Shown here piece after piece: positions 1 to 23,830 of a DNA stretch of 32,285 nucleotides. The stretch covers positions 1 through 32,285 of the forward strand of contig CAXNAD020000073.1 in the NCBI GenBank assembly GCA_964200185.2, in the 5' to 3' direction. Below the pieces are notes generated by a model. It worked only from the letters and a program-made list of their open reading frames with translations, searched no databases and was not told the DNA's origin. This stretch comes from Choristocarpus tenellus KU-1152. Its lineage: Eukaryota > Protista > Phaeophyceae. The translations under genes and the position numbers were made by a program. Every line of letters begins with the position of its first letter. The stretch's first letter is position 1.

Positions 1-106
1 GTTAGGGTTAGGGTTAGGTTTAGGGTTAACCCTAACCACGTTCAATACAATTGGTAAGGGTTAGGGTTAGGGTTAACCCTAACCCTAACCCTAACCCTAA
101 CCCTAA
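1..106. repeat. Telomeric repeats with two head-to-head (TTAGGG)n-(CCCTAA)n junctions
   Basis: ...TTAGGGTTAACCCTAACC... at ~23-32 and ~70-79. Confidence 0.95.
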
Positions 107-180
107 CATTGTTTGCAACTGCCTCATCAACCTTTCAAATTAATCGCCCCCACAACCTCTGACAGAATATACACAATACT

Positions 181-544
181 GACACAACAATAATGTGTGT
201 TCGACCCGACAAATAATGTGTTTCGACACAACAGCAATGTATTTTAATGCAGCAGTAATGTGTTTTGGCACAACAACAATATGCTTTGACACAACAGTAA
301 TGTGTTTTGACACAACAACAATATGCTTTGATATAACAGTAATGTGTTTTGACACAACAACAATATGCTTTGATATAACAGTAATGTGTTTTGGCACAAG
401 AGCAATGTATTTTGATGCAGCAGTAACGTGTTTTGACACAACAACAATATGCTTTGATGCAACAGTAATGTGTTTTGACACAACAACAATATGCTTTGAT
501 ATAACAGTAATGTGTTTTGACACAACAACAATATGCTTTGACAG
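181..544. repeat. Minisatellite, 42-bp unit made of two diverged 21-bp subunits (GTAATGTGTTTTGACACAACA / ACAATATGCTTTGATATAACA), about 8 units
   Basis: Visible periodicity. It explains the repetitive ORFs in four frames. Confidence 0.95.
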
Positions 545-745
545 GACTCCGCCTTCGGGTAGCGGTATTGTCATCGAGGATAAGGAAGATGCTGACGACG
601 TGAGTGATAATGAAACTGGTTCCCTTATGCCTGGAAATACGAAGCCTCCCTTTCATGGGTCATCTACTGAAGAGGGAAAGGAACGCATGGACGCCTCTTT
701 GAGACCTACACGCCCACGATTGCCCGTCTCTCGCCCTCCAACCAT
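545..745 (+). CDS. CTL-like gene, N-terminal acidic/low-complexity exon (TPPSGSGIVIEDKEDADDVSDNE...RPPT)
   Basis: Acceptor tttgacag at 544 and donor AT|gtaagg at 746. CpG-rich compared with the flanks. The phase-2 end joins exon 3333 to make ATG. The true start may lie upstream of the window or at ATG 216. Confidence 0.55.
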
Positions 746-3700
746 GTAAGGGTTAGGGGATTGAGTACCACCTCGGTTGTGAATATTTTTCAAGTTTTTT
801 TTAATCTCACTTCCTAGGCCTTTTGGGGTTAGGGTTAACCCTATAACCCTAACCCTAACCCTAACCCTAACTTTTATTAGTTCAATTTTTTTAATGAGAT
901 TTTGTTCAATCGGTTGGCTCTAATTACGATGTTCCCATTCTCTCTATATATACTGGTGTTTACTTCTGATATGTCATATGTTGAAAGCCTATGACTTGAA
1001 CTTCAAGTCAGCGTAATGCTTGACCCCTAACCCTTTAGTCACTCACCGGTTGGGGTTAACAAATTGGGGGTTAGGGTTAGGGTTAGGGTTAGGGTTAACA
1101 AATTGGGGGTTAGGGTTAGGCCCTTTTTGCAAGTCCTGATAGAGACCTCAGATTTTTCTAACTCATTGAAGGACACTACAGAAAAGGCCTTACTAGGTGA
1201 TCAGGGTTAGGGTTAAGGTTAGGGTTTGAAAAATTAATTGTCAGTGATTTTTCTTGAAGACTCCCAACCAATCTTGAGTTGTCAAAGTCTCAAGTAAGGA
1301 GTCCTAGGATGGCAAGCAACATAAGTAAGAGGTTGAGAGGGCCAGCCTCAGAGACACCTGCAGACATGGGGAAACCGAAAAACAAGAGGGAGGCTCTGAG
1401 GAAGACCAGGCAAGGTCCTTAACGGCTGCGTCGAGGAAGAAATAGGTTAAGAATATATTAACAGAGATGGTGCTCAAAAGGTTGGCAAACTGGTGCTAAA
1501 GAGCAAATGAAGAAATACAAGAAGTTGGTCAAAGAGAGGTTCTTTCTGAGGGGTAGGCGCGTTTACTGGTGATACACTAGCCCTAATCCTGTACTATCAC
1601 TACCAGTTTGTTATCTACAACCATATGGTCCAAACTGAAGTAGTGGAGGCCATCTACTACTTGGCAGTGTGAGTGGGATGCAACAAAGGTTTTGCTGTGT
1701 TGTAAAAACTTTGAAGGATAAGGGGGAGATTTATTCCGACTCTGTGACTGGGAGGGGGACTGTTCAAGTTAGCTCTAACTCTGACAAGTTAACTCTAACT
1801 CTGACAAGTTAACTCTAACTCTGACAAGTTAACTCTAACTCTGACAAGTTAACTCTAACTCTGACAAGTTAACTCTAACTCTGACAAGTTAACTCTAACT
1901 CTGACAAGTTAACTCTAACTCTGATAAGTTAACTCTAACTCTGATAAGTTAACTCTAACTCTGATGTGTTAACTCTAATAAGAGTTGCAAGGTCCTTAAT
2001 CCACAGCTCGACAAGACAGAATTCTCTACCTTTGGACAGCACTTGTTGGGAAGTAAATGTGAAATTACATTTGGGTTTGGTGACCTGGGTAAAAGACAAA
2101 GCTTGAGGTGACTCTCATTGATGGTTCTGGGTACTGTTCCAAAGTGTCGGGGTGTAATTTGTAAACTGCCCAGCTTTCGGACCATAGAGTTGTTTTGGCA
2201 GCAGTTTGTCGGTTAGGGTTAGGGTTAGGGTTAGGGTTATGGAATGAAAACGGGAGATCGAGTACACAAATTGAACAGTCAATAACGCTGGGGTGGTGTA
2301 GTGACCCTAACTGGGATTTAGGGTTAGGGTTAGGGTTAGGGTTAGGGTTAGGGTGGGTGGAAACCAGCAGACTGTGGGAAGCTGGTCACACATGACAAAC
2401 CAGAGGGAGATGACAGATTTCCTCAACACAAGAGGACAAGTATATTGGAGGGAGACGTACACTCAACCTGGTGAGAGTTCTGGATGAGCTGAAAAATACT
2501 TCAGATTTAGCGAGATCGGTGGGTGCTGTAGAGTTAGGGTTAGGGTTTGTAGATAAGAGTTTGCAGGTGGATTATGAGGTGGAACTCATTGTCTACGATG
2601 GCCAAAGATGGCAACAAGACAACATCGAAGCTGCCGATCACTGGCTATTTTTGTAATAAGAAGTATCAAAAGGTGACCAAGCAAAACTCTGAGTACTCCA
2701 GGAGTTTTTTTGTATCTGAAAATGTTGTCTGCTGCCACCCGAAACGATTTGGTCAGCCAAAAACATTTCCTAGGAGTCCTGTGCACATTAGCATTCCCAT
2801 GGCATACATGTTTTGCATCATGCAGAGTTAAAACCTAGGGTTAGGGTTACAATTGTGTTAATGTGAAAACAAAAAATACCTTGAAAACAGAAACTCTCCC
2901 TTTATACGCATAGATCACCTTACTGCATACTGTAGTGAGTTAAAGGCTACTGTAACTTAGGGTTAGGGTTAGGGAGTCAGCATTTATTTCACGTGAATTT
3001 CATGGGATGAATCCACTTGTAGCATATTTGACAGTGGTTTGAATGCCTCCAGTCTATTGTGTGAATTGAGTATTTGCTCCGAATTGGGCCTAGAGCAACA
3101 CGTATGTTGGGTCTATGTGGAGTTAGGACCTCAAATCAATACCTAATGAGGTCAGGGTTAGGGTTAGGGTTTGCCCTCACCTTTCCAACCGCATTTGTTA
3201 AGAAAAAAAATTGGTGTCTAAGTAATAAAAATTAAAAAATACGGAAAGATATTTCCAATCCTTCGATTATTACTTGCCTCCGATATATGTGTTGGATTAT
3301 ATTGGTACATCAAAGTTTTTTTTTTTCATCAGGCAAGGCCATTTCCCTGCAATGTGGAATATTGGTGATGTGGAAGAAGCAGCAGCCTTAAGGGAAAATG
3401 TTTGCTATGGTGGTTTAAGTACTGAACTTTGGATTGCTCTTGCATCTAACACATCTCATTCGTTTGGTAGGCGTGGGGTTGCAGTTCTGTTGCTATAGGG
3501 CGTTCTGTACAGTGCATGACAGGAAGAGTGAGAGTTGTCCCATCTTAATCTGGTAGGAGTGATGCTGAGGTTTTCCCTGCACTCAGAACAATCAGTTTGT
3601 GGAAGGTTGGTTTGTGCTAGTTCACAATTCTCTCGGATCCTTCTTGGTACAGTATGCTACAGTAAGGCACACAAGTGCTTGAGCTGTGAATGAGTTCATT

Positions 3701-6700
3701 ATTTGTATCGGTTTGACTTGGAACAGACGTTTTCTTGGACTATGAGGTAGGTTTGGCATAAAATGTTCTGAAACACTCCTTACTGTTCACATATTCGTGA
3801 TTCTAGGGTTGGGGTTAGATACTTGTGATCAATGCTAGGTGTGAATAGCAGTTCGTATCTCTCTGTGTTTGTTGTGGCAATGTAGATCCACGAAGACAAT
3901 GTGAAGTGGTTAGGGTTAGGGTTAGGGTTAGGGTTAGGGTTAGGTACTTGTGGTCAATGCTAGGTGTGAATAGCAGTTCATATCTCTCTGTTTTTGTTTT
4001 GGCAATGTAGATCCACAAAGATAATGTGAAGTGGTTAGGGTTAGGGTTAGGGTTAGATTCTTGTAATTGATGCTAGGTGTGAATAGCAGTTCATATCTCT
4101 CTGTTTTTGTTGTGGCAATGTAGATCCACAAAGATAATGTGAAGTGAGACTGCGGTCCACTCCTGCCTCCTTGACTTTGAGAAGATGGTGAGTTCATGTT
4201 CCACTGGTGAAGTCTTGAATGTGTCAACGAGGTCTCCTCCAAGTTTATCCAAGAGGTCAATACATCTAGCCATACAGTTGATGGCAAGTTTCAGTACAAG
4301 GGCCTTTTAGGCAGAGATGCCAATAGTGGGGTCATGTTGTGCCTAGGTAGTACTTTCTGTCATGCGGATGGTGATGAGAAGATTAGGGTTAGAGTTTAGC
4401 CATCAATAGGAAAAAAAAAGAATTGTTGTAAAAAAAAGGTAAAAAAAGGGTTAGGGTTTATCCACGTGTTGTCAGGACCTCTTCCTTTGCTTAGGGTTAG
4501 GGTTCTCCTTTCATACAGTTTGCTACCTATAAGCACATGAGATGAGCTTTTTATTACTGGCTAGTAATTGAATCATGATTGTGGAGGACCCCAAGGTGAT
4601 AATGTTGTTCTGTCTAGCTAACCCTAACCCTAACCCTGACTGGGTAGCTCCGTGGCATAATTGAGCTAGTGTCATCTCCCCAATTTCTCACCCACAGAAA
4701 TGACCAAAAAGTTAATTTGATCCATGTTGCACAGAGGCACCGAATGGGGGCACATGGCCTTGCTCGAGCCTGATACCATCCATGGTACAGATGAGTATCC
4801 CTCGGGGATAATTGGCTTGATATTTACTTCACACCCTAGCAATAGACTTTTTTTTGTGCAGTCTGGCACTCTTTGCCCCTCCGTTTGCACTTGTCTGGCA
4901 CTCTTTGCCCCGTGTTATAAGGACCCTCGTGACATGTTAGAAATAGGTTTGTAGGTAATCAAACCAAGAAAACTGCTTTTGTCATCTACTTGTGATCTAT
5001 TTCCTTCCAGACAAAATGGATGAGGTTAGTTTTTTTTTGTCATTCACTGTCCACGTGGAGGCATGGGGGTACCAACTTCTCCTCATCAGGCCTTCCAAAT
5101 CATGGAAGGCGTGGGTGGTTTGAGCTGTGGTTTCCAAGTATCCGAGGTAGGAGTGTGGCCTGCACTCCATTTTCCCCCTGTATTTGTGTCTCTGGCGAAG
5201 GTGCTTGTTCTTGTTCCTCTGGCTGTCCTCTCTTAGTGACATCCTCTTGTCTATACTTGGTCCCAGCACCTCAGCACGCTATGTTGCAATAATTCTTTTA
5301 TGGCTTATTGATAGAACTACACCTGTGATGAGAATTACATGCACTCAGACACACTTGTTGGGACAATGCTGTTGAGCAACAATTGTTTGAAGTACTCAGT
5401 ACCCTTGTGTTTCACTTACAATGACCATAATGGGCTGCTGCCGAATTTCTATGGTGAGGATGGGGTACTACATGATGCAATGCTGTGATTGAGTAATGGA
5501 GGGGTAGCTCAGCCAGTTAGCACCCACTTTGTTCCATCAGCTCTAGAAAGAAAGGAACAACAATGGAGAAGTTGTGGATGGATAAACATGTGGGGACTGA
5601 CCAAGAGATCTGTCACTAATCAATCACAGTGCTGGAGCAACACCAGGAAGAGAGGTGCAGGGGAGGTCTGTGTGATCTGTGCTGGGTGAGAAGAATGAGA
5701 AGCTCCACCATACAGCAGCCATGAATCTCCAGTGGCACCAGGAGGAATGGCTTGGAGTGGGACTGTGTAAGGGTGGAAAGGGTGGGTGTGCCCGGGCAGG
5801 GTCTGTGCATGCTTGTGCAAAATTTGATCTAGCTAAGTGTATGTGTATAGTCGTGGGGTCTGTGCATCACATTAGACTTGAAAATGTTCAACACTTAGAA
5901 ATTTCGGTATCACAGGTCAGGGCTCTGCCCAGCGGCATAAGAACAAGTAACATTCTGGTACAATCATCACCTCAATTTTTGTTCATAGTATCTGTTGACT
6001 CAAGGTAGAATCAGGGTTAGGGTAACAAAGGGAGGGGGCTTATGACAGTAGTTCCAGAATATCCACTCCTTTTTTTGTAGCAATACCCTACTACTATCTT
6101 TTTGTTGTGGATCGTAGCGCTTGATATTTGATCCTGCTTTTTGCTAATGATTGACACTGACATTTTGTCAACAGTTCTTTTTGTTGAAACATTCACTGTC
6201 TCAGCACCCATGCTTGTATTTCATGTTGAGAGTATAGTTGACAGTTTGTTCTTGTCCTGGCCTTGGAGAAGGTCAATTACTAATAGGGTCAACCATGAAG
6301 TTACAGACCTGTTTGGCATGACTGAGGCATGCATTTGTCAGCATCGATGTCCTGTTTCATAGCATGGTTGATGAAGTGGCAGTGGCAAATAGCTCTCATC
6401 TTGTCAAGACAAGATAGTCCCAGCAACGTTTCTCGAGCTGTGGTGGGTGGCTTGAGCTAAGTTGGCTCCAATTGTGAGCAGTATATTGACTGATAGTGTT
6501 GTTCCACTTAAGAGCTCTTCTTAAGGCCTCTAAGGGTCATGCTCTTTTGATGGGCTGATGTGGTCAACCTCTCTGGGTAGACACTAGTAACACTGCATCT
6601 CGGTTGTAATGATTGGCCTATGATAAGTGAATCATGTTCATCTCGGTTGTAATGATTGGCCTATTATAATCAAATAATGTTCATTTCGGTTGCAATGATT

Positions 6701-9700
6701 GGCCTATTATAATCAAATCATGTTCAGACCTACTTCAAGCAGCAATGCAGTATTACTTCAATTTTTTTGTATTGTAATGGTGCATATAGGGGTTAGGGTT
6801 ACAAAATGTGTCCATTGTGTGGGTACAGGATGGAGTCAGCAAGATGCTGCATAGGCTGACGACCAATGAGAATCTTGCTTTGACCGTGGTGAAGATAATG
6901 AGGTCAATGTCAGATTACTTGGAAGTGACCTGACTTAGAACTATGTATGGGGGATACATTTCAGATGTTTTCGTGATCAATTGGAGCAAGTTGTGAAGGA
7001 ATGTGGTCAACTGATTGGTTCAGACCAGTGGTAGTCAGTGGTACCTATGTGGCATGTGATTGACATGATGCATGGCAGGGAGTAGACATGTTGTGAATTT
7101 CAGATATACTGCATCGCCCAAGGATTTGACTCTGTTTGGAATGGTAGATAATGGATAGTTTTGGTAGATGACAGAAAAAGAAAAAATATGTAGTTCGTGA
7201 CCTCCTACATCGTGCAAAGAGAACATTAATAGGAATTCAGGAGATTGGATGATATGTTGTGTGATGCATAGGGTTTGAGAAGCATAGAAGGTTGCGAGCG
7301 CTGCCCTGCCATGTGAAAGAACCCTAACCCTAACCCTGCCATGTGAAAGAACCTTCATGGGTATTTGGAAGTGTACACTGTAACTTTGGAAGAATGTTGA
7401 GACGAGGAGTGATTTGAGATTTTTGCTGTGCATCGTGTCTTTGATCTATGGTAAAGATGCAGCAGGTCAAAGGTTGATAGCTCCACTTTGTGCGTCAGAA
7501 CTGCAATAGTCAAGTCTTGAGCAGTCAAGTTTGGTGCTACTCTAGTTCATTGATGACAATGAAAGCAAGATCCATACTTTGGCATTTTGGTTGGTTGTGC
7601 CAAAGAGTAATCTGACCAGGGGACTATTTGCTCAAGACACATGGTTGAACCTTGCCCCTATTGTTTGAGCAGGTCCAGAGATGTACGCTACACGGTGCTG
7701 TTCTTGCTTCAGTCAGTGATCACCCTTACTGTTTCCTTCAAGACTGGTAGGTATTAGAGGAAGGGTCTTGAAGTCATATCAAGATTACGTACTAAGATGC
7801 TTAAGTACTACTCAAAGTATTCAGTTCGAGTACTCTAACCCTAACCCTAACCCTAACCCTAACCTCTGGAATAACACGTGCCGCATCTAACAGTGTCTCC
7901 AAACACCTGTTTGCTCTGTTATCGTTTAGTGCTGTCTTGGAGGTCTTTTTTAGCACCCTCTTCACCTTATAATTTCAACATCATCGCACTCTCTTCACAT
8001 GGGGGCCAGGACCAGAGATTGTCGATGTAGTCACTACCCCTTCGTGTGCCTCCTTTCTGTTCATATATATATATAGTTCTGTTAGCCTTGGAAGAGACAC
8101 AAGCCATGGTAAGGACTGACTCTAAGCACCTACAATCGATTTGGGGTTGATGTTACCTCATTGATTTCAAATTTTGTTATTATTTCCCAATATTCATCCG
8201 CAATTCTGGTCTTTCCTTCTCTAGGCAACAACTACAATGTCAACAGCGCAAGTCCTAACGAAGCTCAGTGGATACCCATTCCTGATGGGGTTCGTTGGGG
8301 CAATTGTCTCAACCTGGGGGCTGCCATGGGGTTGTTCCTTTCTTGCATGTTCCAGTGGGTCCTAATGAACACCCGACTCGGTTCCTTCCTGGCGAAAAGG
8401 TCACTGCATGCTGCTGTGGCATTGGAGATCATCTTAAGGTGATAGAGTTGGGGATATATTTTGTGACTGGTTGGACTGTGCGTTACGCTATAGCGCATGC
8501 ATGAATGACAGAGGGTTAGTTTAGGACAAGAGTTAGGGCCTGGTTTGATTTAAGGTCGCTTTAATTTTCATGCCAAACTAGGATTTGTTGGGTTAGCTCT
8601 TCTATGGTTAGTGCTTTGTGTCAATCCTTGGGCTCAGGATGGTAGCTTGCAGCTCTGAGCTATTGGGGAAACAACTTGAGAAGAAATCAGACTTGGGAAA
8701 TTTTATGTATGTGAAGTGTTGAGCGAGTCCGTTCTATCGAACTCACCCCACTTCTCCTGCTCATAAACTGGCGCTCCCACTTCCCCTGCTAGCTTGAATC
8801 CGGTTTCCGTTCTTTCTTTCTCATCCCCATCTCCCTCTTCCACCTGCCCTAACCCTAACCCTAACCCTAACCCTAACCCTAACCCTAACCCTGTGTTTTT
8901 TGCACCGTTGTTGTTAGTGTTGGCATCCTTGCCTTTTCTCGTGTACATTGGCCCTTGGCAGTCGTGCTGGGGGTAATGGCAGTTAATGGTGTTAGATGGG
9001 GAACGCGTTTGAAAGACTCACGGCACTTCCTTGGCATGCTGGTTGACATGGTGAGTAGTAGGGTTAGGGTTGGGACTGACGAGAGCATTTAAGGCCTACC
9101 CTCAGGAGATGCTATTTATTTTTGTGCTAACTTTAGGGTTAGGGTTAGGGTTAGGGTTAGGGTTAGGGTGAGCCGTGATAGTGCTGTGGTTGTATGTAAT
9201 GGGCTGACATTGGGCTGCACCTGTTTGCAGTCTAGTGGTTAGTTGGGACTTAAAATCTGGTTTCACTCAGTGCTAAACTCATGTAACAAATGTGGGCCAT
9301 TTTTTGTTAGTTTTCCTGAGTCGAATATCGCTTAGGGTTAGGGTAAGGAGATTTGATGTGGTTTTTGACTTGGTGAAATATTTGTGAAGTACTTAGTGTT
9401 CTCCTCTAATACGCCACAGCCTCCACAAGAAAAGTGTGCAATCTTTGTTGATGTATGGTTTCACTCCCCTTCAGCGAGATAACCCTAAGAATATAGGGTT
9501 AGGGTTAGGGTTAGGGTTAGGGTTAGTGTTCATCTTTTGCATGTGCTCCGTGATGCACTATCTTCCCCTTTGTCTTTCACAACAGTGTGAGGCTTTCGTT
9601 GAGCAGGGTCCGTGATACACCCTGAAGTGTCTCGCTGCAACTGGTTTGATCAACTGAGATTTCATGTGCATCCCTCTGCCTCCTTTTGAGGTATGCAGTG

Positions 9701-12700
9701 TGCCCACCTGTTGCTGCTGATATCCTGTGACAGCACAGACTGAGTGAGTCAAGGTGTCCTAACTCCACTAAAAACTCCTTCTAAGTCACTAAAGGGATGT
9801 GTAGCCTTTTCTGACCCGTGTGAGGGCTCACACTGTTGTTGTAGCACCATCCATACTTCGTATTTACAACACCCCTGTGTTAGTTTGAGGTCTCAATTGC
9901 TTGGTGGAGAAGGTGCTGGTCTAATCTCCATCCCAGGATGACGCCAACCAGATGCTCTGCTCCCCTCCTGTTCTATATCAACATGTCTTTATAACCTAGC
10001 TGTGAAGAGAACCTGAAACTGTTTGTGAGGAAATGAATTTCAACACATTTCTAAGTGGTACTGTCGCTGATGAACAAGGATAGTGCGAGGTTTACTGCTG
10101 TCACTCTTTATTGCTTCCTTGACCTGTTGTATCCTTGAGTTCTGTTTTATGGTTTGGAACTCCTGATTCACAACTTCTACAGTTTGTTAGAATTGACTAG
10201 GCACCATCGAAAAATATATTTATCCTTTTCACTATTTCATGTTCTAACGAACTATTTCCTTATGCCATACCAGTGTAAAACCAACCGAAATTTGCGACCA
10301 TCTCAATATGATCTGTTTTCAAAAATGAGAGGCATTTTCATTAACCTGACATAATAGCACGGTTGAGAGCAATGATTCCACTCTTGATGCCCATGTGTAG
10401 TCCACATCTAAACCTTAGAATGTACATGGACGTTCTCTAGGTTAGGGTTAGGGTTGACGAGGAGCACAGTAGGGATTTTGTGGTCGCAGTTCTTTTGTTT
10501 GGCACCAAGATAAAACTGTGCTTGGTAGATTGCGATCACCTTGCACACTCATTCCTCTTGTGAAAGATGTTGCACCCTTGACAGGTCTTTGGTTTTCTAC
10601 TGCATTGTGTCGTATCACTTAACGTATCACTTGATGCTCGTGTGAAATCACCATCAAATCTGTTGGCTGTGTTAACTTGATTGAGTTTGAAAGACCCACC
10701 CTCTAAGGTGGGGCCTGTCATGATGAGATGCACACCATCTCATCACATGGCATTCTGGTGGAGTGGTCAGTTCGTAGTGCATAATATTTGTCCATGGAGG
10801 CTTGATTTGGATACTGATGAGCCTCAAAATGTTGCTTTATTGGGCGTGAAGCATCCCAACTTCGAGCTTCCATGAAGGGAAATGTGTGAAATACATATTT
10901 TGAACAGAATAGTGACTCCTGCTCCTGTTGGGCTTTCTACTGGTACCCCTGCTTCAGTTTTTTTTTTTTCTGATTTAGGGTAATATATCGTTAATCCTTG
11001 CTGGTTGGGACCAGACTTTGGAGACTGGTTTGATAGTTGGTAGTACAGAACAGTATGCTGGCCTTTGATATACTGCAACACGATATCCAGGGTGAGTTAT
11101 CACAGTGAGAAGATGAGCCAGGCGTAGCTGTTGCTAGAAGTGGAAGCCACTAGCTGCGATCCTGTCCAGCATCCCCATTTCTATTTTTGGTTCCTGTCTG
11201 GCCTGAACCCTTCCCTCAGACTATAACCACCACCTCTACCCCGCCTTGGTTAAGAGTGACCCTCTAACCCCTGTGTACAAGCCAATGACTTGTGGCCTGC
11301 CCTTCCATATCTGAAATACAGCACTGCTTTCCACAGACCGGTGCAGCAAAATTGCGCAGTTGTTACCCCTACACTCTCAGCATGCTGTATGTCTTTCATT
11401 ATCAGTTCCTCTTCCCTCATACAGTCACTAACCCTACCCTGGTCTCAGTCATGCAAAACTCATTGTGCTCCAAGTTTTGATGGAGGCTTTTACCCTCCTG
11501 CATAAGCCCAGTCAATTCTCTTTGATATCTTCCCTCTAACACTGTCACATTATTGATTTCACCCACATAGGCTCTACTTAGGGTTAGGTTTGGTAGGAGA
11601 CTCAGTCTTTCAATGTATTCATTTTCCACCCAGACCTCCAAGCTCCATCACCAACTCCTCCATCTTCATTTATTGATTGATACGGGTCCCTTGCCTTCCC
11701 CAATCTCAATCCTGGCTATATCATCTTCATTTATTGATTGATGAACATCCGTGGCAGTTGTAGACGTTAAATCTCTCTCAGTGCCTGGAACGCCTCGCAT
11801 GGTAATCTGTGGCTATTGAGGATATCCTTGGCTGGTCTCCTAAGACGTGCTAAACAATACAGACATTGCAAAACATGTCCTCCTCGCAACCTCCCACTTG
11901 TATTGTTGCTCCTTGAATCTCAGGTGTCAGGTGTCAGGTGTCAGACCCTGTCCTGAGATGCTCCTTCGGCAGCAGTGTTGCCTGCCATCCCCCCGTAGAT
12001 GCATGCACCATAGACCTTTCCATTCCTTTCCCACCTGGGTTAATCTATGTTTCGTTCTCCCATGAACACCTTCATCTGTCTTTCCAAGTATATTCAAGTA
12101 TGGTCAAGTCATTGTAGGGTGACCTCATCATCAGGCACAGTACTTATCCTACCCTTTCCCAACGTTTTTGCTCGGATTCATTCCCTGCCAGGTCTTGTGT
12201 GCAAAACTAGATTGACAACCCACATAATGAGAGTGGCAGGTAGCATGTTAATTGAATCAGTACTAGGTGGTTAGGGTTAGGTTTAAACCTAACCCTAACC
12301 CTAACCCGTCCAACCCTTCCGTACTAAGAGTTGCTACCTAGCCAGCTGTTGAGTAAGTCAACAGCTCACCTGAGGTGGGGTTTCTCAATTACTTTCCATG
12401 CTATCAATCTACGCTATTGTGTAGTCCATGAGTTGCGCAGGAGAACTCCCCTGTCCTTAACAACCACCACTGTCATCTTATTTCATTTCTTCAAACAAAG
12501 CTTAGGGTTAGGGTTATTTTTCACACACAGTACAGGGCTAGTGCTAGAGTTTAGTTTTTTTAAATTGTGTGTGTGAGAGAGTGAAAAGTGGTGGGTCTTG
12601 AAAGTTGATGGTTCCCAAGTGCACATTGTGTACTGCTGGTCCATTTAGTTGAGTTCTAGGAAGTTTCCTTCGCCGTTTAAGAATATTTTCGACTCACAAG

Positions 12701-15700
12701 TTAGGGTTAGGATTATAGGGTTAGGTTTTTTTAATGTGTGTGAAAAAGGAAGGAAAAAAACCAGTGGGGTTTCCTAAGACGAAGGGATTTCCCTGTGCGC
12801 TGCAGTCCATTCTGTTCTGCTTGCTGTCCCTAGAACTTGGGAATGTTACACCTAACTCAGTTGCTCCTCTGTTGCTCTGATAAAATTGTGTAGAGAAACC
12901 CAACCTCGGAGTTAATTGTCATCCTGCTTGTAACCCTAAGTTGACCGGTTTAGGAATGAGAAGAATGATCAATGTCTGCTAAATCTTGAGAGTTGTTGAT
13001 GGGTACACTCTGCATGTGACACACTGTTTTTGGAGGTGGTGGAGGTGCTAGGTGAAGTACGGGGGGCTGCTGGAGTACCAATCCTGATCTTGTTGCTCCA
13101 AGTGATGTATCTAATATGGTGGGGGAGGGCACTCTCCTCAAGTTTGACAGGCACTAGCATGAGCTCTGGTTGGGGAGGGTCGGTGCTAGTTCTGATGCTG
13201 TTCAACTTGTACTGGACTTGTCAGGTACGCAATCCCTAACCCTGAATCAAATACGAACAGTTATGTGGGGGTGGTTGAACACTTATCACTCTCTTTTGAA
13301 ATTTGGTGTAAGGAAACACCAGGTATAAGAAATCAATTAATAATATGATAAATGTCCTAACCTCAGAATTTGTGCTTGGGTTGTGTCAGTGTTGGGTTGT
13401 AGTAGTGACTGAAGGTAAAGGACGATAGCTATTTCACAAAAGGAAATGATATCAGCGCTTTTAGATAAGACTTGCTGTAATCTCTTGCAGTTCCTCTTAC
13501 TGCAATGTACTTGACATATCCCTGACTGCGACAATGGTCATGTGGGCAAATCATTTGTTGGTGTGACTAAGCTGCTTCTCTTCACTAACGGCTATCTCTT
13601 GTCTTCTTTGCATGTTCTTCTACTGTTTGTTCTTCTACTGTTTGTGCACTGCATCCCCTCGTGATACCTCTTTCCGGCAGGTGTTTAGAGGTATCATGGT
13701 TGTATTTGTGTCTGGGACAATGTCCTCGTGCTGCACATCAGACAATAGGAAGTCAAAAGGTTCAGGGTTTTCACAAGAACTTGTTGAAGGAAAGGGGTAT
13801 CTCGATGAATATGACGAGTACCTCAATGATGATGTTCTTGTGGGAGAGGGGGGGAGGGATGGAGGCGACACCGATGGCAATCCTCTAGTATCAGGGAGAA
13901 ATGAGTCGCATGACTCTGTTTCAGGATCAGGACGACCAAAGGAGAGGGGTTCATCAAGGGTGAGGACGGTTCCTCCTGTCATTTCCCTCGTTTGTTAGCT
14001 TGACCTTGAAGCCTTGCCCATTTTTGGTGTGTGTGTAAAACTGCCTGTATGTGACCTATCAACAACTTCAATGAACTTTAGGATCCTCTATGGGCCTACT
14101 ACAAATTTGTCTACGATACTTCATCAACCTTAGTGATTCCAATACATCTGGGTGATTCTCAATAGTTCCACACTTGAGTAGTCTGTGGTGGTGCCTCCGC
14201 TGTATAATGAGACTTGACCTGTACCCCGTTTTCTTGTCAGGAAAACACACTAGTGGAAAACACACTAGTGGCAGTCTACCTTCGCATTGCTCTCACTTCC
14301 AGCTTTGGTTCAGCTTGCAAGGGAGCCATCCTATCACCACTTGGCCAGGTAAGCTCGGTCTCGGAGAGGTGTCAAGCATGTACCCTCCTCAAACCTTTTA
14401 ATCCAGCAATGTGGTGGAGTAGAAAATGTAGCCGTTGGCCATGGAAGTAGCTTGCAAACACCGTTGGCTTGGCTTGACAGGTTTGGTTTGGGGTAGTGTA
14501 GTGCATTGATAAGAAAAGAAACCCTTTGAGCAGGAGGTAAGACATTGTTTTTGTGGTTTGTAATGGGTGACCGGCGTGTCCTGCTCATCAATCACTGTTA
14601 AGTCACGCATGCATTCTGTGCAGCAAAATTACCTTTTGACACTGTTTTAATGGTGTTCACTGTTAAGAAGTGGTTCAATGGTCCAAGACGTTTTTCACTG
14701 CCCTATTTTACGGGATGGCACTGAACCAGTTTCGAGATCTCAGACAGCAGTAGGTTGTATTGTTATCGACTGCAATTGAGGGGGGGGGAGGGGGAGGGGG
14801 TGTCACTCTGGACAGTTCAGTTGATTGTAAGCGCACTGCATTGCTATGCACCACCACATAGAGCAGCATTGATTGTTGCTCTGTTTACTCTTTTCCAATG
14901 CTTTTGTTACTTGTGATGAGGTCCCATGTCAAGAACAAGCTGGTATTGACTCAAAGAAGCCAGTCACAACACCATCGAACCGTCCAATCACATCCATTCA
15001 GACCATGAACCGCAGTATATAGTCTCGCTAAGAGCAACCATTTGTTTTTTACTGAAGCTGTGACAAATACAATCTTGCATTGTTTGCATATTTCTTTGTT
15101 CACATGATTGGTAGCTCACCTCCTGCTCAGCTTGATACCTTAGGGTTAGGGTTAGGGTTAGGGTTAGGATTTTTGTTCACATGAGATTGGTAGCTCACCT
15201 CCTGCTTAGCTTGGCAGCTGATGTCCTCGTCTAGCAAATGCAAGTTATCTGCAGTCACACAAACATAGAGCTGTTTATCGTTTAAGAGAGTAAGTGGACG
15301 CTACTTTGACAGAGTACCTCAACAAGAACTATAAATTTCGGCCAAGGCAATAAAACAGTGCTTCTTTTGTTTAAGAGCATGGATCCCCCCTAAGCCATGC
15401 TCCTAGAAGGACAAATTTCGCGCTGCATTTGGTCATTTCTTCCTGCATTTTGTGTAAATGTTACAAATAGTCATTAAGGAAACGCTTGATAATATTATTT
15501 CAATATCAGCTCCTAGGATACTACCATCTTTCTGATTGGAACATTTGTTCAGCACATCCCAATCTTGATGAAAACTCCAAATGTAGAGCTGATTCTAATG
15601 CTAACCCTATCTCCACTAGTGCTTACAATTTTTGTTTTCCTGTATGGACTCTAAATTTCATGCATTTCAATCCCTCCAGCTCAGATCTATGGTGACGTGC

Positions 15701-18700
15701 TTGACTTCAAGGGTGAGGGAGCCTTCTGGTAGGCAAATATCAAGAGGTGGCCGTTGTGTAGATGCCTTTGAGTCGCTGACAAGGGGGTACCACGACTTGG
15801 CGCTCGTTCATGTTGGTGCCTACAGGTATACCAACTTTGTAAGCTTTCCATTTTTCTGAATGCTATCCCCAACAGCACTTTCCTCTCCTGGTGTGGGTTC
15901 CAACTTAGGGTTGGGGTTAGGGTTAGCACGATGGAAGCACTCACAATTCAAACCCTACTGAAGTCCAGGCCATGGCAGGCGTTGAGCAAGTGGCAATAGT
16001 TGAAAGTATATAGTGAGTGCACTAGCAGCGAGGATCAGATGGGGAGAAGTATTACTTAATAGAGGACATCAACTCAAGGACTGTTGGCAATAGTGCATAG
16101 CCAACATATTATTTTTGTGAAGATTGGTTATCAGCCATGTGAATGCACAACTGCCTGTTTAGGAGAGCCTCACATCAACCTGTGGCAGTGGCAACAATCT
16201 AAATAATCTACTGGTAGAATGGATAGTCAGCATAAGGTACCCAGGAGGAAGAGATTGTGGTGTTTTTTCTCATCTTTCCATGTCCCCTCTCAGGTGATTT
16301 TGCCAGTAACAGAATGGGATCAACACACAACCCTAACCCTGATTTCGATAGTTTTCCTGCTGAACTAGTTGTGTACTTAAGTGCTTCTACATACTCAGTA
16401 CTTCAGTTGACAAATTTCAATCCTTGCACATTAGAGTGTTTGCAGACAGATCAATTGGAATGTGCCTGAATATTTGTATTTTCAACCTACTGCATGGAAC
16501 ATGTTGATTTAACTGTAATATGTCTGGCGTTGGATGTCACGATGACAGGAGGATGTACACAAGAGTTTAGTAGGTGCAGTCAGTAGAAACGTAACTGCTT
16601 TTTGTCCAATACTTTTTTTAATTTTTTTCTGAGTGATTGGTATTGGTCACCTCAATGCGGATTTTTTTTTCGCATTATGTTAGAGAGGGAATGCTCGCTG
16701 TTGAGATTGCATGCAAAGTAGACCAGTAGAAAGCATGAAGTCTTGTCTGGCTTTGGGAATTATTTTAGAGTTAGTGGCAACCTCCTGCACAATGGTGACC
16801 TTCCTTGCGTACACGCCTCACTTTAATTTGGACTCAGATTGTGTCACTGACTGAGTTAAAAACACAAAATTGGGCTCCACTGTGGTTGTCAGTGTGTAGG
16901 AACATTCTGAATTTGTTCCCCATCCTTTATAGTTTGTTGGGTTTTTGCTCTGTTGCCCCACACTATCCATTTGTCCAGGTGCATGGTGATCACTGTGGTG
17001 CGGGTTGGGCGGAGGACCGTTGTCTGAGCTGAAGTGTGAAACAAACCCCAACATCAGATCTCATCGTAACAAGTTGGTGTCACTCCCCTCGACTTGTACA
17101 ACAGCTTTATGCCAGCTCTAATTGCCTCATAGTAATGTTTCGATCTTGTCCCATTAGTACCAACTTTGCATTTCGGCGCATTGGTACTAACATATTAATT
17201 TTGCTTGTCCCATTTTGTAATTGCCCCATTTTTTTAATAGTACTGCATATTCCCCTGCTGTGGATGAGGTCTGGAAGCTTCTCCGACAATCTGGACTAGA
17301 GGCGGTGTTTGCAGAAGACCTTGTAGGGCCAGCAATGAACTGGCTCTCAGTATCCATGGCAGTTTTGACAGCTGCAGCTATTGGTGCTGCTCCACATGGC
17401 CATGCTGCAGACAGGTACCAAGTATGCCCTGCCCTGTAAATACGTATCAGGTGGTATTGTGTATGTATTGCTCATTTTGTTTTGTTGCAACTCATTCTAC
17501 TTGTAATAGTTTGCAACTGACAACAGGAAGGTTGTAATAATAATAATACTAATAAAAATAATACTAATCGTCTTCAATGGCTGCGCACCATGTTTGAATG
17601 CTGAATTGACTCTTCATTCATTTTCTGTTACTCTAACTGTTTCCAAGAATCGTTCCCTCTTCCAGTTCTTATCTCTCAGCCGGTTCCTTTCACTGATTTC
17701 CACTGACTAATTGTGACAGTTAATGGAGTGCTTATCTTTGGGGTCGGAAAGACTTGAGTGCATTTTAGGGTGGTTCAGTTCCTGTATCGCAAATATACCC
17801 TACTGTTGTGCTTAGAGGTACTGAGGCTGAGGAGGTAACTCCATCACTCCATCACTGTAAAGTTGAAGTGATACCTTAGTGTTCAAATCGTGGTGGTAGG
17901 TCACTTTTCCCATGTGGTTGCTTGGTACCACGAGAATAATGCACCCCGTATTCCAATCCAACTTAGGGTTACTGTTTTGAGTGAGAGTAAGAATGGTGTC
18001 CAATTCTCCTGTTGGTGTGGTGTTCTTGCGAAGAGGGCATTGCAGTGGAAATGATACACTCAAAGGCAAGAGATAAAACACACTGCACAAGATGAACACA
18101 CGGTGCATGTGATTTGACTCGGCTGTAGAGGAGTAGGGAGAGTTGATGAACAATGTAGTATCTGAATCTGTAATGCATGAGAAGCAATGCCCTGACCTTA
18201 GTGCCAGGTGAATCAAGTTAGAACTACAATTTAGGCTAGTCCAGGCTAACATGAAAATGATGGTATTAGTTTCCCCAGAGAGGTCAAAGTATCTGGGGGG
18301 GGGGTGTCGGCATCCTTTTTTCACCCTTTTTTCGATTTTCACTTTTTTGATGCGATTTGGTCGCACGTGTCGGATTTGAAATGTCAGCAGAAACAGAAGT
18401 TATTTGACTGAAACAGACGCTCCCTCACAAACCACCCCCCCACCCCCTCTCCCAGATACTTTGACCCAGAGGCAATTGGAACAGTTTTTGCAAAATATAC
18501 TCTGGGGAAGATAACATGCTTTGCAAGATTGACATTAGCTGAGCTTCTTGGTATTGTGCCTGTTGTAGAAGGATTAGGTCAGACTGTGCCTGTACATTGT
18601 CGAACACTTTGAAGTATTGACGTAACTTTGATTTGTCCCTGTAAAAGAGAACACTCTATAAAGGAAAGGGTAATAGTCTATACTTGAAAGGGAGAATATT

Positions 18701-20346
18701 CTTAGTCAGAACAGCACACTTTTGCTAAATTTATAGTGAGCAATACAGATATCCCTGCCCTTGTTTCTGTATGTGTTTCATTTTGGGGCTCCTCGACTAT
18801 TTAGTACTTGCCGAACAAAGCTTAACCTGTTGTATGTTGATTCTATATCTGCATCTCTTGGCTACCTGCTGTGTTTGCTTTTGACCTCTGAATGACTGCT
18901 CAGGTTGATATTCTTCACCTTCCTTGTGTTTTACGTGGTTCGCTCCTGTATGCAAACAGGAACAGAGGTATGCACTTTTATCATGATCACATTTACTCTG
19001 AGCACCATTTCGCTGCACCTACAGGACTGTAAAAATTCCTGGAATAAACAGGATCCGCAATCCTGTTGGAGAGTTCTACACATAAATGAAGTTTGTGCTC
19101 CATGGTAGTACAAGTGCAGAGTCATTTGTAGTGCAAAAATCGTAAAACAAGCAAAGAAGATTTTGATTATGTAATCGTTGCGGTATATTCTAACCCGAAC
19201 CCTAACCCTGAATACATCCAGTGACAAATTGTACTATCACAATGCTGAACTTCTATGAATATCCATGGACAGGAATGTTGGTGTGTCCCTGTAAGTGGAT
19301 TTCAATTTACTCCAAACCAAGAATTACTCAGAATGGCCCTAGCTTCAGTATGTTGCTGATATAGCACATGCTCTTTGGTAGTATTACAAACCAAATGTCA
19401 CTTGCGCATGACCCCAGTTCTCACTTCTCTTGTATGATGTAATATTCCCTCCAGGATTTCCTCTTTGTACTGTGGCCCCTTTCACCGATTTGACAGACTG
19501 AACCACAAATATGAGTAGCAAGAGCATAACGGCTGTATCTTGTTTAACTTCCCCTTGGTATCTTGGTCAAAACGTATTTCTTACACATTTACCACTTTTT
19601 TCCGTGCTGTGGATGCCTGGTCAAATCTTTGGTAGTGGGGTCAGTTTGAAGACTGTGGTTGAAGCATCCTCTTCATTGAAATAAAGGATTGGTACTAGGA
19701 CAATTGTAGAAATGGCCAAAGCCTCCTGTAGCAACCAACCTGGAAATGATCATTTTTTCAATTAACTGCCTTCAGTGTGTATAATCCTTGCCTTACCAGG
19801 TGCTAAGGTCTGCTGTTTATGCAGTTTACCTCCAATTTGTGGACAATCCACACAGCTTGGGAGAGGTACGTGACTTGGAAAAATGTAGCATTGCTTGTAG
19901 ATGTGGAGTGTGTATTTTAGAAGTTGCTGGGTTGTGATCTGTGGCATCAAATATAGACTGTGCATTGAGTTGTGATCCAATCTCCAATCAAGGAAAGAAA
20001 GGCAGTATTGGAGATTCACCAATACTTCAGAGATGGTCAAATACCTACAACCCACTGTAGAGTTCTATTTCCAGTACTCCTGAAATACTGCATTGCCAAT
20101 AATGTGTGCAGCCGGGCTTTCTGTATTGGTAGTGACAAGTGCAATATATGTTGTCTTTCCATTTTGCTAAAATTTTGTCAGTGCAGACCCTTTTTATCAT
20201 GTTTCTCGCTTTCTGAACCTCTGTGCTCTCTTCTGTTCTTGCTCTGTGTGACGTCCTATCAGCGGTTCTCCCTTATCTACCACCGCCTTGAGCGTGTTTC
20301 AGAGTTATGGAAATACCAGGATCAACTGTGGGGTGTGCAGGTCTAG
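545..20346 (+). CDS. Choline transporter-like (CTL/SLC44/PNS1 family) multi-pass membrane protein, spliced gene. Exons: 545-745, 3333-3466, 8010-8108 (uncertain), 8225-8438, 8918-9050, 13036-13224, 13681-13959, 14241-14348, 15680-15825, 17241-17414, 18904-18967, 19800-19865, 20263-20346
   Basis: All introns are GT-AG and the phases join without stops (1891 nt = 1 + 630 codons including TAG). The product has family-typical segments in the expected order: LMLFNLYWTCQ|VFRGIMVVFVSG (cf. LFSLYWTSQVIKNVVHVTVAG), RIALTSSFGSACKGAIL (cf. RAxTxSFGSICFGSL), FESLTRGYHDLALVHVGAYSTAYSPAVDEVWKLLRQSGLEAVFAEDLVG (cf. FNxYAxxxVAIYGxSFxxAAxxxWxLxxxxGxxAxINDDL) and VLRSAVYAVYLQFVDNP. Family assignment is by motif recognition, not a database search. 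Confidence 0.85.
1295..1720 (+). mobile_element. Highly decayed RTE-type LINE reverse-transcriptase C-terminal fragments
   Basis: Broken translations LGWQAT*VRG*EGQPQRHL...GRPGKVLNGCVEEEI...WQTGAK and MVQTEVVEAI loosely resemble RTE motifs (LRWAGHVVRM..RLPKR, GRP.K.W.DCV..D, M.KAEVVEALLYG). Confidence 0.3.
1765..1978. repeat. 20-bp tandem repeat (CAAGTTAACTCTAACTCTGA), about 10.5 copies
   Basis: Near-perfect 20-nt period. Confidence 0.97.
3333..3466 (+). CDS. CTL-like gene exon (QGHFPAMWNIGDVEEAAALRENVCYGGLSTELWIALASNTSHSF)
   Basis: Poly-T tract plus catcag acceptor, donor G|gtaggc. Phase 2 in and phase 1 out, compatible with neighbouring exons. Confidence 0.6.
3804..4146. repeat. Three ~90-bp direct repeats, each preceded by a TTAGGG tract of different length
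   Basis: Copies at ~3819-3907, 3943-4032 and 4057-4146 share ...ATGCTAGGTGTGAATAGCAGTTC...GGCAATGTAGATCCAC...AATGTGAAGTG. Confidence 0.95.
5620..5820 (-). mobile_element. Decayed Ty1/copia LTR retrotransposon fragment (aspartic protease active-site region)
   Basis: DSWLLYGGASHS resembles the copia WxLDSGASxH motif. The surrounding ~5-6.6 kb region is CpG-stripped and riddled with stops. Confidence 0.4.
6596..6726. repeat. 43-bp tandem repeat x3 (CATCTCGGTTGTAATGATTGGCCTAT...)
   Basis: Units start at 6596, 6639 and 6682. Confidence 0.92.
8010..8108 (+). CDS. Candidate CTL-like exon (putative first TM segment), contains (AT)6
   Basis: ccag acceptor, strong gtaagg donor at 8109, symmetric phase 1-1 and open as PEIVDVVTTPSCASFLFIYIYSSVSLGRDTSH. 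The reading frame is ambiguous (see findings). Confidence 0.4.
8225..8438 (+). CDS. CTL-like exon, TM segments (…CLNLGAAMGLFLSCMFQWVLMNTRLGSFLAKRSLHAAVALEIIL)
   Basis: Pyrimidine tract plus ctag acceptor, AG|gtgata donor, hydrophobic helices. Confidence 0.75.
8918..9050 (+). CDS. CTL-like exon (VGILAFSRVHWPLAVVLGVMAVNGVRWGTRLKDSRHFLGMLVDM)
   Basis: ttgttag acceptor and canonical gtgagt donor. Phase 2 in and phase 0 out. It is not in the ORF track. Confidence 0.8.
9560..10030 (-). mobile_element. Possible decayed copia gag remnant
   Basis: EVWMVLQQQCEP resembles the gag EAWxxLxxxYEP motif. This is weak evidence. Confidence 0.22.
13036..13224 (+). CDS. CTL-like exon (VVEVLGEV...ILLLQVMYLIWWG...VLVLMLFNLYWTCQ)
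   Basis: Two TM helices and the conserved YWTxQ motif. Donor CAG|gtacgc. The acceptor is a less common GAG. Confidence 0.85.
13681..13959 (+). CDS. CTL-like exon (VFRGIMVVFVSGTMSSCC + long acidic/Gly-rich loop)
   Basis: ctctttccggcag acceptor and AGG|gtgagg donor. It continues the YWTxQ-V motif. Confidence 0.85.
14241..14348 (+). CDS. CTL-like exon (ENTLVENTLVAVYLRIALTSSFGSACKGAILSPLGQ)
   Basis: ttttcttgtcag acceptor, CAG|gtaagc donor and the SFGS motif. Confidence 0.88.
15680..15825 (+). CDS. CTL-like exon (LRSMVTCL...VDAFESLTRGYHDLALVHVGAY)
   Basis: ccctccag acceptor and AG|gtatac donor. Phase 0 in and phase 2 out. Confidence 0.82.
17185..17191 (+). promoter_or_regulatory. Canonical branch-point sequence TACTAAC
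   Basis: Exact TACTAAC about 50 nt upstream of the 17240 acceptor. Confidence 0.6.
17241..17414 (+). CDS. CTL-like exon (TAYSPAVDEVWKLLRQSGLEAVFAEDLVGPAMNWLSVSMAVLTAAAIG...)
   Basis: TACTAAC branch point at ~17185, T-tract plus aatag acceptor, AG|gtacca donor. Confidence 0.88.
18282..18466. mobile_element. MITE-like element (185 bp) with terminal inverted repeats GGTCAAAGTATCTGGG...CCCAGATACTTTGACC
   Basis: Perfect 16-bp TIRs continued inward by G/C runs. Flanks CAGAGA/CAGAGG are a possible 6-bp TSD with one mismatch. A related TIR occurs at 32209. Confidence 0.75.
18904..18967 (+). CDS. CTL-like exon (LIFFTFLVFYVVRSCMQTGTE)
   Basis: ctcag acceptor, GAG|gtatgc donor, TM helix and compatible phases. 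Confidence 0.78.
19800..19865 (+). CDS. CTL-like exon (VLRSAVYAVYLQFVDNPHSLGE)
   Basis: ccttgccttaccag acceptor and GAG|gtacgt donor. It resembles the family's VxxAVxTxxVCFAEDP segment. Confidence 0.82.
20263..20346 (+). CDS. CTL-like terminal exon (RFSLIYHRLERVSELWKYQDQLWGVQV*)
   Basis: Long pyrimidine tract plus atcag acceptor, phase 0, ends in TAG. Confidence 0.75.
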   Translation, partial: RFSLIYHRLERVSELWKYQDQLWGVQV

Positions 20347-22329
20347 CTTTCTAGTATGTGTCAATCTCGAGCGGTCGATGGTGTTTTGGCTTGGGAAGTT
20401 GACAAAGAGGGGTGAAACATCTGACACAGTGAAAATTGAGGCACTAGCAACACACACATGCTGGAGGACGTCCAATACAGCTGGATTCGTAGGGGACTTG
20501 AATTTTAGAGAGTAGGAAGGTGATCATGGTCAGGTGTATAGGTCAGGTGATAGACTGACACATGGCATCAAAGAGTAAAAACCAGGAAATTTCCTCCTTC
20601 AAATTGGAGATGTTTTGAAGTAGATATCAAATTGTGTCATATCTTGTTCGCATCAAGAGTTAGGTGCTGTGCAACCATCACCATACCTGCGTGGCTTTAT
20701 TGTGACAGCAGGATGAAGGCACATTCAGTGTTCTGTGTTTTCTGACTTCTTCTGCCTTCTTCTGTTGGGTGACCAGGCATGTTGAGACATGGAGGACCAC
20801 ATACGTTCCCCTCTCTCATACCTCAATCAAAAGTTTGGATTTTGCAGCACTTCAGTAGCAAGTTTCCTTGAGAACCAGAAAGGATGTCTGTAAAAATGCT
20901 AAGTCTTGCATATAGTATGTGTCAACCTTTCAAGTGTTGGGTCAAGTGCAATGGCTACCCATACTTAACGTCTATTGGTATTTTCATAAATGTACTAAGT
21001 TCCACTAAAGGGTGGATTGTAGAGTCTTGCACCATTATGTCGGCAATGGAGAATTTAGTGTACACTGAATGGTGAAAAACCTCCTGGAGCAGACATTCCA
21101 CCATGGTCCATTATAGCATGAATACGAGCGTTCTGTTTTTCTTACAAAAGGACTCGCAAAAGGAGAGTTCTCCATTGTAGTATAGGTCGGTTGCAGCAAA
21201 AGGACAATGAGATGCAAGCAATTATTATGTGGAGTCATACTCTTGATACTCTGCGATTATGATTGTGTACTTCTAGTAACGTGCACCAGGGGATGTTGAC
21301 TGTCTGTCTCCCGTTATTGCAATCCCTTCGGTTAGTGTGACAATGGCATGAGTTTGAAAGTAGGAAGGTGAAGCAAGCAAAAGAGATATATGAATGCTCC
21401 TGGTAGTGGTGAGCTCGGCTAGTTCAAGATCACAAGTGCAAGTATGGCCTGGTATTGTGTTGACACAAGATTTTTGTGATAAGAATGAAATCTCGTATCA
21501 ACTAATGCTAGAGGGACAACAAAAGATACATCGATGACTAAGTGTGAACTGAATCTCCATCGTACTGTTGTCAGTTTATTTCAGTCATACAATACCATCA
21601 ACGAGTTGAAAGGGCTTACTTTTTCTGTTCACCAGGCTAGAGGGAAGTCCTCACAGTGATAGAAGTTTTGTAGTTCACTTGTACACTTGCAACAGCCTAC
21701 ACTACACATAATTCAACTTTCATGAGCAAGTCCTGAAAGTCTAGTTTAAGGCACGGTATAGGAGTGGACGAAGGTGGGATGTTTTGGATGAATGTGGAGT
21801 GTAATGGAGGTGGAGCATTTTAGGAGGATTGTTGTGCGAGTGGATTTGCAGAAATTGGTTGGCGGTTGGATGAGTGGAAAATGGCGACATAGTTGGAGTA
21901 AAAAAGATGGTTGTGACGATGGTGTGATACGGAGTGGTTCGACGTCAGTTGAGGCATGGAGTGGATGCACAGCTAAGACCAGGTCAAATAATTAATTCAG
22001 AACTTGTGAGGAAGGCAAAACAATGACTAATCAAATTGTGGAAAACAGGGTTGTTTGTCACCATATCGTTACTGCCGCATGTCATATACCGACATATCGG
22101 TTGAGGTTCTTTTCTGAGATTTCGGTTCAACTGTGGTGGATCTTAGGAATGAAGTTTCTGCGACTGCTTGTGGCATATCTCCAATGTCAGGGGTTTCTAT
22201 CCTAAACCCCATCCGAACCGTCATCCTCCCCACTTCCTCACTCAGTACTTGTCCTTGTGTCCAACCTTAAACTCTCGTCTCATTACGGTTCGTCTTGGTT
22301 CATCTGGTCTGATTTGCTTGGTGATCGAT

Positions 22330-22860
22330 TGTCTTCGCCACCCTTCCCTCTGTGAATCACGCCTTCACAGAATTACACCTTTCACAAATAGTATCAGCCC
22401 TGTCACAGTGGACAGGAATCTCCGCATGGATCTGGTGTTCAATGCAGGGGCGCTGGCGGACGCTGGAACAGCCCCCTACAGGGACAAAGGCCTTCTACTC
22501 GAAGTCACATTTGCAGAGGTACAGGCAACCTCCCACCCTACCCACTCATCCACCAGCAAGCAATGGTGTAGCTGCTGCTGCAGCTGAGGCACGAAAGTGC
22601 ACCCACTACGAGTATTCTTTTGATCCTCGTAGTTATAATAACCTCAACACCTTCATGGTTGAAAGTTTTGGGCGCCTCAGCAACCAAGCGGAATGTTTCC
22701 TGGATGAGCTGGCTACTCACGTGGTAGGGGGGCAAGGGGCAGGAGGTTGTGGCAGGAAAGAAAGGAGTAGTTAAATCCTGGCTACGCCAAATTGCCTCGG
22801 TACCTACGCAAGTGGTACTATCCAGACGTGTCATGCGTTTTAAGATGGTATCACCAGGAA
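22330..22860 (+). mobile_element. CRE-like non-LTR retrotransposon 3' fragment (restriction-like endonuclease domain), frameshifted
   Basis: LRMDLVFNAGALADA...DKGLLLEVTFAE...GVAAAAAEARKCTHY...SFDPRSY...TFMVESFGRL...FLDELATHVVGG...KGVVKSWLRQIASVPTQVVLSRRV across two frameshifts. This is the R(P/M)D-(D/E)V-K-Y RLE layout followed by the ESFGR motif. Confidence 0.8.
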
Positions 22861-23549: not shown

Positions 23550-23830
23550 AACCAACACAGTAATCCCACAAACGCGGCGTGATTTCAATGTCTCTTGAGA
23601 GTCGTTGATTGCCTCCTTGACGCATTGGCCTACGATCTTCCATCGTCAGCATCTTACACAAGAGAACTACAGGGCTGATGGTGTCGGCTTCAACCGAGCA
23701 GCATGAGTTCGCAATATCGTTTGCAGATCAGCGGGGCTTCGCCGCCCAAGTGGCCAAGGAGAAGGCGGCTATCGAAGCATCGAGGCTTGATGTGAGTTTC
23801 CGATACAGAGATAACCCTTCTTTCTCATAT
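23550..23830. promoter_or_regulatory. CpG-retaining patch, likely unmethylated promoter/first-exon region
   Basis: About 11 CpG in 23641-23800 versus 1 CpG in 5281-5760 (hand counts). It overlaps ATG 23678. Confidence 0.5.

Follow-up and report, generated by a model that had tools for sequence, protein, structure and literature searches.

A telomeric tract between perfect 20-bp target copies in the brown alga Choristocarpus tenellus: a candidate scar of break repair by telomerase

How does a short telomeric run come to lie between two perfect copies of its own target, within a unique stretch of a brown-algal genome, and which polymerase wrote it? Cells are thought to keep telomerase off internal breaks because the healing of a break by a new telomere loses the chromosome arm; mammals have only tens to hundreds of internal telomeric scars per genome. 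We addressed this question in bases 1–32,285 of contig C73 (hereafter the window) of the C. tenellus assembly, which comprises 164 Mb in 27,310 contigs, and in tracts sampled from elsewhere in the same genome. The telomere repeat of brown algae is TTAGGG (10.1101/2024.05.11.593484), and the tract on which this study centers is a short, exact run of that hexamer in unique sequence (Table 1).

The structure of the locus can be read directly. The two 20-mers are identical, with 10 telomeric bases between them, as the original prediction had stated. The AACC that ends the left copy and the CCCT that opens the right copy continue the telomeric register of these bases, with the result that the exact tract reaches four bases into each copy and amounts to precisely three AACCCT units; the predicted microhomology, four in-register bases at each junction, is thus present on both sides. 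Read on the minus strand, the sequence runs from the CAGGG that closes the right-hand copy through TTAGGGTTAG to GGTT, where it resumes in register, again exactly as had been proposed. The AGGG in which the target terminates on that strand therefore comprises four break-site bases that match the insert, and is the putative primer end for a minus-strand synthesis of the telomeric G-strand. The G-strand phases of the tract, A3 for its start and T2 for its end, are both common classes in the genome sample. In terms of its flanking modification, the locus belongs to the duplication class, with a perfect repeat of 20 bp.

The duplication of the 20-mer around the tract is not due to chance. The 20-mer occurs exactly twice in the window, with no further occurrence at up to three mismatches, and was recovered in none of 100 shuffles; the expected number of exact abutting repeats of at least 20 bp across 139 sampled tracts is 7 × 10−9. 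The net change at the site is the 20-bp duplication plus 10 new bases, i.e., a gain of 30 bp. The ancestral site, as reconstructed from the duplication itself, is unambiguous: left flank, one 20-mer, right flank, and no tract. Any choice of breakpoint inside the 4-base overlaps leads back to this same site, and the ancestral sequence is therefore unique. The locus is a clean, young, and self-documenting example of a kind already known from mammals. A tandem duplication of a 30-bp unit was also considered and rejected, as the period-30 similarity covers 50 bases where 60 are needed. The 10 bases outside each copy of the 20-mer match the 10-base filler at only 2/10 and 3/10 positions, and it is because these outer flanks are unrelated to the filler that the similarity stops at 50 bases.

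Table 1. Positions of the telomeric tracts, flanking duplications, and comparison sites considered in the text (window coordinates unless a contig or locus is given).
Feature	Position	Strand	Flanking repeat	In-register overlap, left/right (bases)	Remark
Left copy of the 20-bp target	7304–7323				Final 4 bases AACC in telomeric register
Telomeric filler, newly written	7324–7333	-			CTAACCCTAA on +, TTAGGGTTAG on -; not derivable from the target
Right copy of the 20-bp target	7334–7353				Initial 4 bases CCCT (+) / AGGG (-)
Exact telomeric tract, 18 bp (window 7320)	7320–7337	G-strand on -	20 bp	4 / 4	4 + 10 + 4 bases
Second window case (window 15140)	15095–15213	+	About 40–45 bp, imperfect		29-bp TTAGGG tract (15140–15168) between imperfect direct copies; five extra bases at one junction
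Candidate third window case (window 30781)	30775–30798	+	8 bp	2 / 2	8-mer GTATAATA on each side of 8 telomeric bases
Tract on contig C5			11 bp	0 / 0	
Tract on contig C30			11 bp	2 / 4	
Tract on contig C4			8 bp	0 / 1	
Tract on contig C9			7 bp	2 / 2	
Dispersed repeat, about 250 bp	27596–27850; L012:2110–2372 (contig C3); L007:1975–2235 (contig C3435)				
Empty site in the window's repeat copy	27716–27730				Paralog comparison
Head-to-head telomeric junctions	20–37, 57–107, 826–871, 12269–12307				

The target had been predicted to lie in a host repeat, other copies of which were to be searched for the tract-free allele. This part of the prediction did not hold, as the 20-bp target is single-copy in the assembly. 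A genome search with 261 bp around the site recovered the self-match only; with a 4.2-kb query, the part holding the site again matched only itself, the sole repeat in that query being window 5256–5975; and a 25-base target/flank pattern, run over the whole assembly with three mismatches allowed, likewise returned nothing beyond the site itself. There are hence no other copies in which a tract-free allele could be sought, and two exact-pattern scans of metagenome contigs, one with the right flank and one with the left, recovered neither a related locus nor an empty allele. The repeat at window 5256–5975 is a dispersed one, with more than 40 diverged copies elsewhere in the genome (64–79% identity). 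Nine loci centered on it (about 27 kb) held a single telomere-like tract.

The site is spanned by an ORF of 132 codons on the minus strand (7035–7433), which has no significant Pfam match and whose translation looks non-coding. A comparison of 18 further window ORFs with Pfam likewise gave no significant match, the one listed (for the ORF at 195–749) falling below the cut-off, and a search of the window for Rfam families and tRNAs recovered none. Between about 3 and 21 kb, the plus strand of the window shows an excess of T over A and of G over C. Such a skew would be expected of a long, intron-rich transcribed gene, but none of the ORFs compared had a significant Pfam match.

We lean, on balance, towards reading 7304–7353 as the scar of a repaired double-strand break, at which telomerase added a short telomeric run before the ends were rejoined. 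The starting site would have been a single 20-mer with no tract, and the break, or its processing, would have left the 20-mer on both ends. A possible route to this is a staggered break with 3' overhangs of about 20 bases; another is limited copying across the break before joining. As telomerase makes the G-strand only, the sole extendable end would be the minus-strand 3' end in CAGGG, which could pair with a CCCUAA-type telomerase RNA template and receive TTAGGGTTAG in register. The GGTT of the extended end would then anneal to the AACC that terminates the opposite 3' end, with fill-in and ligation fixing the gained bases. We infer telomerase as the polymerase, along with the geometry of the break and the microhomology-mediated joining. 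The original prediction had invoked just such an extension at a staggered break, followed by microhomology-mediated rejoining: the extendable CAGGG end, the in-register addition, and the 4-base overlap fit it, but the stagger is only one way to keep the 20-mer on both ends, and a DNA polymerase would give the same product. Moreover, complementary overhangs of 20 bases would tend to re-anneal, which makes a plain staggered break mechanically awkward. The ancestral state at this site comes from the duplication alone, the searches for an empty allele or ortholog being negative, and the wider evidence for this reading comes from other tracts in the genome.

We tabulated flanking duplications and junction registers for the window and 30 further loci, together 122 kb with 139 non-redundant tracts, the loci being chosen in part for holding a tract. 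Four to seven of these 139 tracts lie between duplications that range from 7 to about 45 bp (Table 1), against a chance expectation of 0.35 repeats of at least 7 bp and 0.0015 of at least 11 bp; controls with the repeat placed 8–30 bases off the tract gave fewer matches. The duplication class takes in 3–5% of the tracts, near the 4.5–16% of mammals, where it has been attributed to staggered breaks and accounts for 4.6% of rodent, 16% of primate, and 4.5% of horse loci (PMC2246262; PMC7215372). In the second window case, the copies (15095–15134 and about 15169–15213) differ by one 2-base indel and one substitution, and the five extra bases, ATACC, stand at the left junction of the tract; the event belongs to the same class as that at 7304–7353 but is older. 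The candidate third window case possibly belongs to the class as well, its 8-mer being short enough to arise by chance.

The junctions of the duplication-flanked tracts are enriched for bases in the telomeric register. At least two such bases are present at 8 of the 12 junction sides, against an expectation of 1 in 16 (binomial p = 9 × 10−8). Since short repeats are found partly through the overlapping bases themselves, the safer figure is that for repeats of at least 11 bp, where the count is 4 of 6 junction sides (p = 2 × 10−4). Among mammalian loci, about 77% have in-register bases at the break site (PMC2246262, PMC7215372).

A filled/empty comparison was afforded by a dispersed repeat, three copies of which (about 81% identical to one another) are available in the window and on two other contigs (Table 1). 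In the copy on contig C3 (L012:2233–2251), 17 bases, namely 14 telomeric bases plus TGT, are inserted directly after a GG. This GG precedes the insertion point in 3/3 copies, and the copies in the window and on contig C3435 (L007) are empty there. The comparison shows directly a one-step insertion with two in-register seed bases on the 5' side of the G-strand; it carries no target duplication. Telomeric insertions occur de novo, then, at other sites of this genome. At a second site of the same repeat, a telomere-like motif is present in all copies, two of which read TTAGGGTTAGGGT and the third GTAGAGGGT; this is either an older insertion shared by the subfamily or growth from a telomere-like seed. 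Given that this motif is common to the three copies, not every tract is a private insertion.

The tracts further display a polarity. Seventy-nine isolated tracts that had played no part as bait in the searches do not begin at every G-strand phase equally often (p = 1 × 10−4; p = 0.007 in the window alone and p = 0.02 outside it), with starts at T1, A3, and G5 favored and those at G4 and G6 rare. No such preference is seen at the other end, where the last base is uniform in phase (p = 0.25). A phase bias restricted to the start is predicted by one-directional, template-primed synthesis with random termination or trimming, and is not predicted by symmetric copying of a duplex; the test draws on 79–139 tracts, part of them from loci selected for their tracts. 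The genome has a telomerase RBD domain, with a match above the Pfam cut-off, and family-A DNA polymerase genes are present too. Together, the paralog comparison, the junction enrichment, the 5' phase bias, and the telomerase RBD support de novo, seed-primed, polar insertion in this genome. In rodents, the strongest evidence for telomerase is flanks derived from the telomerase RNA; here, no sequence derived from telomerase RNA beyond its template was seen beside the tracts, which counts against the telomerase reading.

Telomeric tracts are abundant in this genome. The three-unit 18-mer occurs 6,354 times genome-wide compared to 6 occurrences of a reversed control, and the telomeric 24-mer occurs 2,344 times; from these two counts, there are about 4,010 tracts with an in-phase 18-mer, or one per 41 kb. 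In the human genome, 83 comparable interstitial telomeric loci are known (PMC2246262). The density of tracts with at least three repeats (about 4,000 in 164 Mb) is thus about a thousand-fold above that of human. A human origin of the contig was considered, given that humans share the TTAGGG repeat, and was rejected: nothing besides the repeat suggests it, and no human region approaches this tract density.

The same product could have been made without telomerase, had a DNA polymerase taken a telomeric tract already in the genome as its template, whether in polymerase-theta-type end joining or in microhomology-mediated template switching. A 3' end at a break or a stalled fork would anneal by 4 bases to a telomere or an interstitial tract, about 10 bases would be copied, and a 4-base switch back to a point 20 bases upstream would cause the 20-mer to be re-copied. 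We regard this as rather unlikely, though deserving of real weight, since it explains the duplication without a 20-base stagger, and since 4-base microhomology at each junction together with a short duplication is the classic signature of a polymerase template switch, which counts to that extent against telomerase. Known polymerase-theta end joining and template switching similarly leave short inserts with microhomology at both junctions and often a small duplication, and the family-A DNA polymerase genes would supply the enzyme. Templates are plentiful as well: any tract of at least 18 bp could have served as the donor, and there are 47 tracts in the window and about 4,000 of at least 18 bp in the genome. 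The nearest candidate donors, at 6790–6801 and 7835–7864, are about 500 bp off, however, with no template closer than about 480 bp, and the inserts here are purely telomeric, carrying none of the non-telomeric bases of a donor locus. Nor does a symmetric process predict the biased G-strand start phase with unbiased ends, and in a region as yet free of tracts, the earliest ones would still have to come from a telomere or telomerase.

Target-primed reverse transcription usually leaves target-site duplications of 7–20 bp, and the 20-bp and 7–11-bp duplications seen here fall within that range. A retroelement enzyme might accordingly have reverse-transcribed telomeric RNA at a nicked target, as non-LTR retrotransposons copy themselves between direct duplications of like size. 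This is improbable in our estimation. The insert consists of 10 telomeric bases only; no element body, tail, or common flank accompanies the tracts; only about 3–5% of tracts are duplicated at all, and the paralog-defined insertion on contig C3 is not; and none of the 19 window ORFs compared with Pfam resembles a reverse transcriptase. An all-against-all comparison of tract flanks recovered only the overlaps of neighboring tracts and one dispersed repeat, and no recurrent non-telomeric k-mers abut the tracts in the 139-tract sample; the lack of a shared element or k-mer argues against a mobile element. Slightly less probable still are two separate events, i.e., a 20-bp tandem duplication followed by a telomeric insertion at its junction, or the expansion of a seed by slippage. 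Simple tandem doubling of the 20-mer would indeed place AACC beside CCCT and so create a telomere-like seed, but slippage on AACCCCCT cannot yield the 10-base CTAACCCTAA, and both events would have to hit the same base. The copies and the tract are, moreover, all perfect, suggesting one recent event, and the same architecture is found at other tracts with unrelated targets. An assembly artefact or chance is least credible, to the point of being barely worth entertaining: the assembly is broken into 27,310 contigs and assemblers can be misled by telomeric tracts, but the 50-bp structure is shorter than a sequencing read and is embedded in unique sequence, 7 kb in from the end of the contig, and the expectation by chance is negligible.

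The closest known counterparts of the telomerase scar that we favor are the interstitial telomeric sequences of primates, rodents, and horse (Nergadze et al. 2007; Santagostino et al. 2020), which arise via telomerase in break repair and include a target-duplication class and in-register microhomology (PMC2246262, PMC7215372). Both they and the algal tracts are short, exact TTAGGG runs in unique sequence, with a minority duplication class, in-register bases at the break, and head-to-head tracts at complex events. They differ in that the host here is a brown alga, a stramenopile, with tracts about a thousand-fold denser, and in that neither an empty ortholog nor a telomerase-RNA-derived flank was found in our searches. 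De novo telomere addition (chromosome healing) likewise extends, in register, a 3' end with a few template-complementary bases; unlike in healing, about 10 bases were added here and the ends were rejoined, with no new chromosome end. Among algae, the haptophyte Calcidiscus leptoporus has been reported, without an analysis of insertion junctions, to possess pervasive interstitial telomeric tracts (PMC13518057). It too is marine, has TTAGGG telomeres, and shows frequent tracts genome-wide, albeit as a member of a different lineage. The searchable literature yielded no account of interstitial telomeric tracts in brown algae.

A broader prospect is that, in this brown-algal lineage, telomerase is a routine patching polymerase at internal breaks, working at roughly a thousand times the mammalian density. 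We put this forward tentatively, as a generalization that may well fail. If it were true, the locus at 7304–7353 would be one of the few scars in which the sequence before the break and the end that primed synthesis can both still be read, base by base. A genome with thousands of fresh, perfect scars, some with duplicated targets that expose the primer end, would be a natural system for studying the access of telomerase to breaks, the rejoining of its products, and genome evolution through insertions, duplications, and inverted junctions.

Within the window, there are 47 exact telomeric tracts of 10–46 bp, with the G-strand on the plus strand in 35 and on the minus strand in 12. Their distribution is uneven: nearly all fall in the first 16 kb, and the stretch 1–19209 contains 45 of the 47, the rest being within 19210–32285. 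At 3804–4146, a 125-bp unit is repeated 2.8 times, with a telomeric tract in each unit whose length differs (37 and 24 bp); the presence of a tract in each unit indicates that local tandem duplication, too, multiplies tracts and alters their length, carrying them along as passengers. At 1053–1120, telomeric runs take turns with GGGTTAACAAATTGG, and copies of a 21-base unit extend across a 30-bp tract, which looks like one junction copied in repeated rounds. The head-to-head palindrome AGGGTTAACCCT has three exact occurrences (0.01 expected), and the tail-to-tail form AACCCTAGGGTT is absent from the window. In about 7 cases among the 139 sampled tracts, the G-strand 3' end is succeeded by an inverted C-strand tract. 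Such head-to-head junctions (Table 1) suggest the fusion of two extended ends or fold-back priming. Beyond the telomeric tracts, the window features three unrelated minisatellites, at 214–541 (42 bp × 7.8), 1765–1978 (20 bp × 10.7), and 6596–6726 (43 bp × 3), and an unbroken run of 23 consecutive G at 32223–32245.
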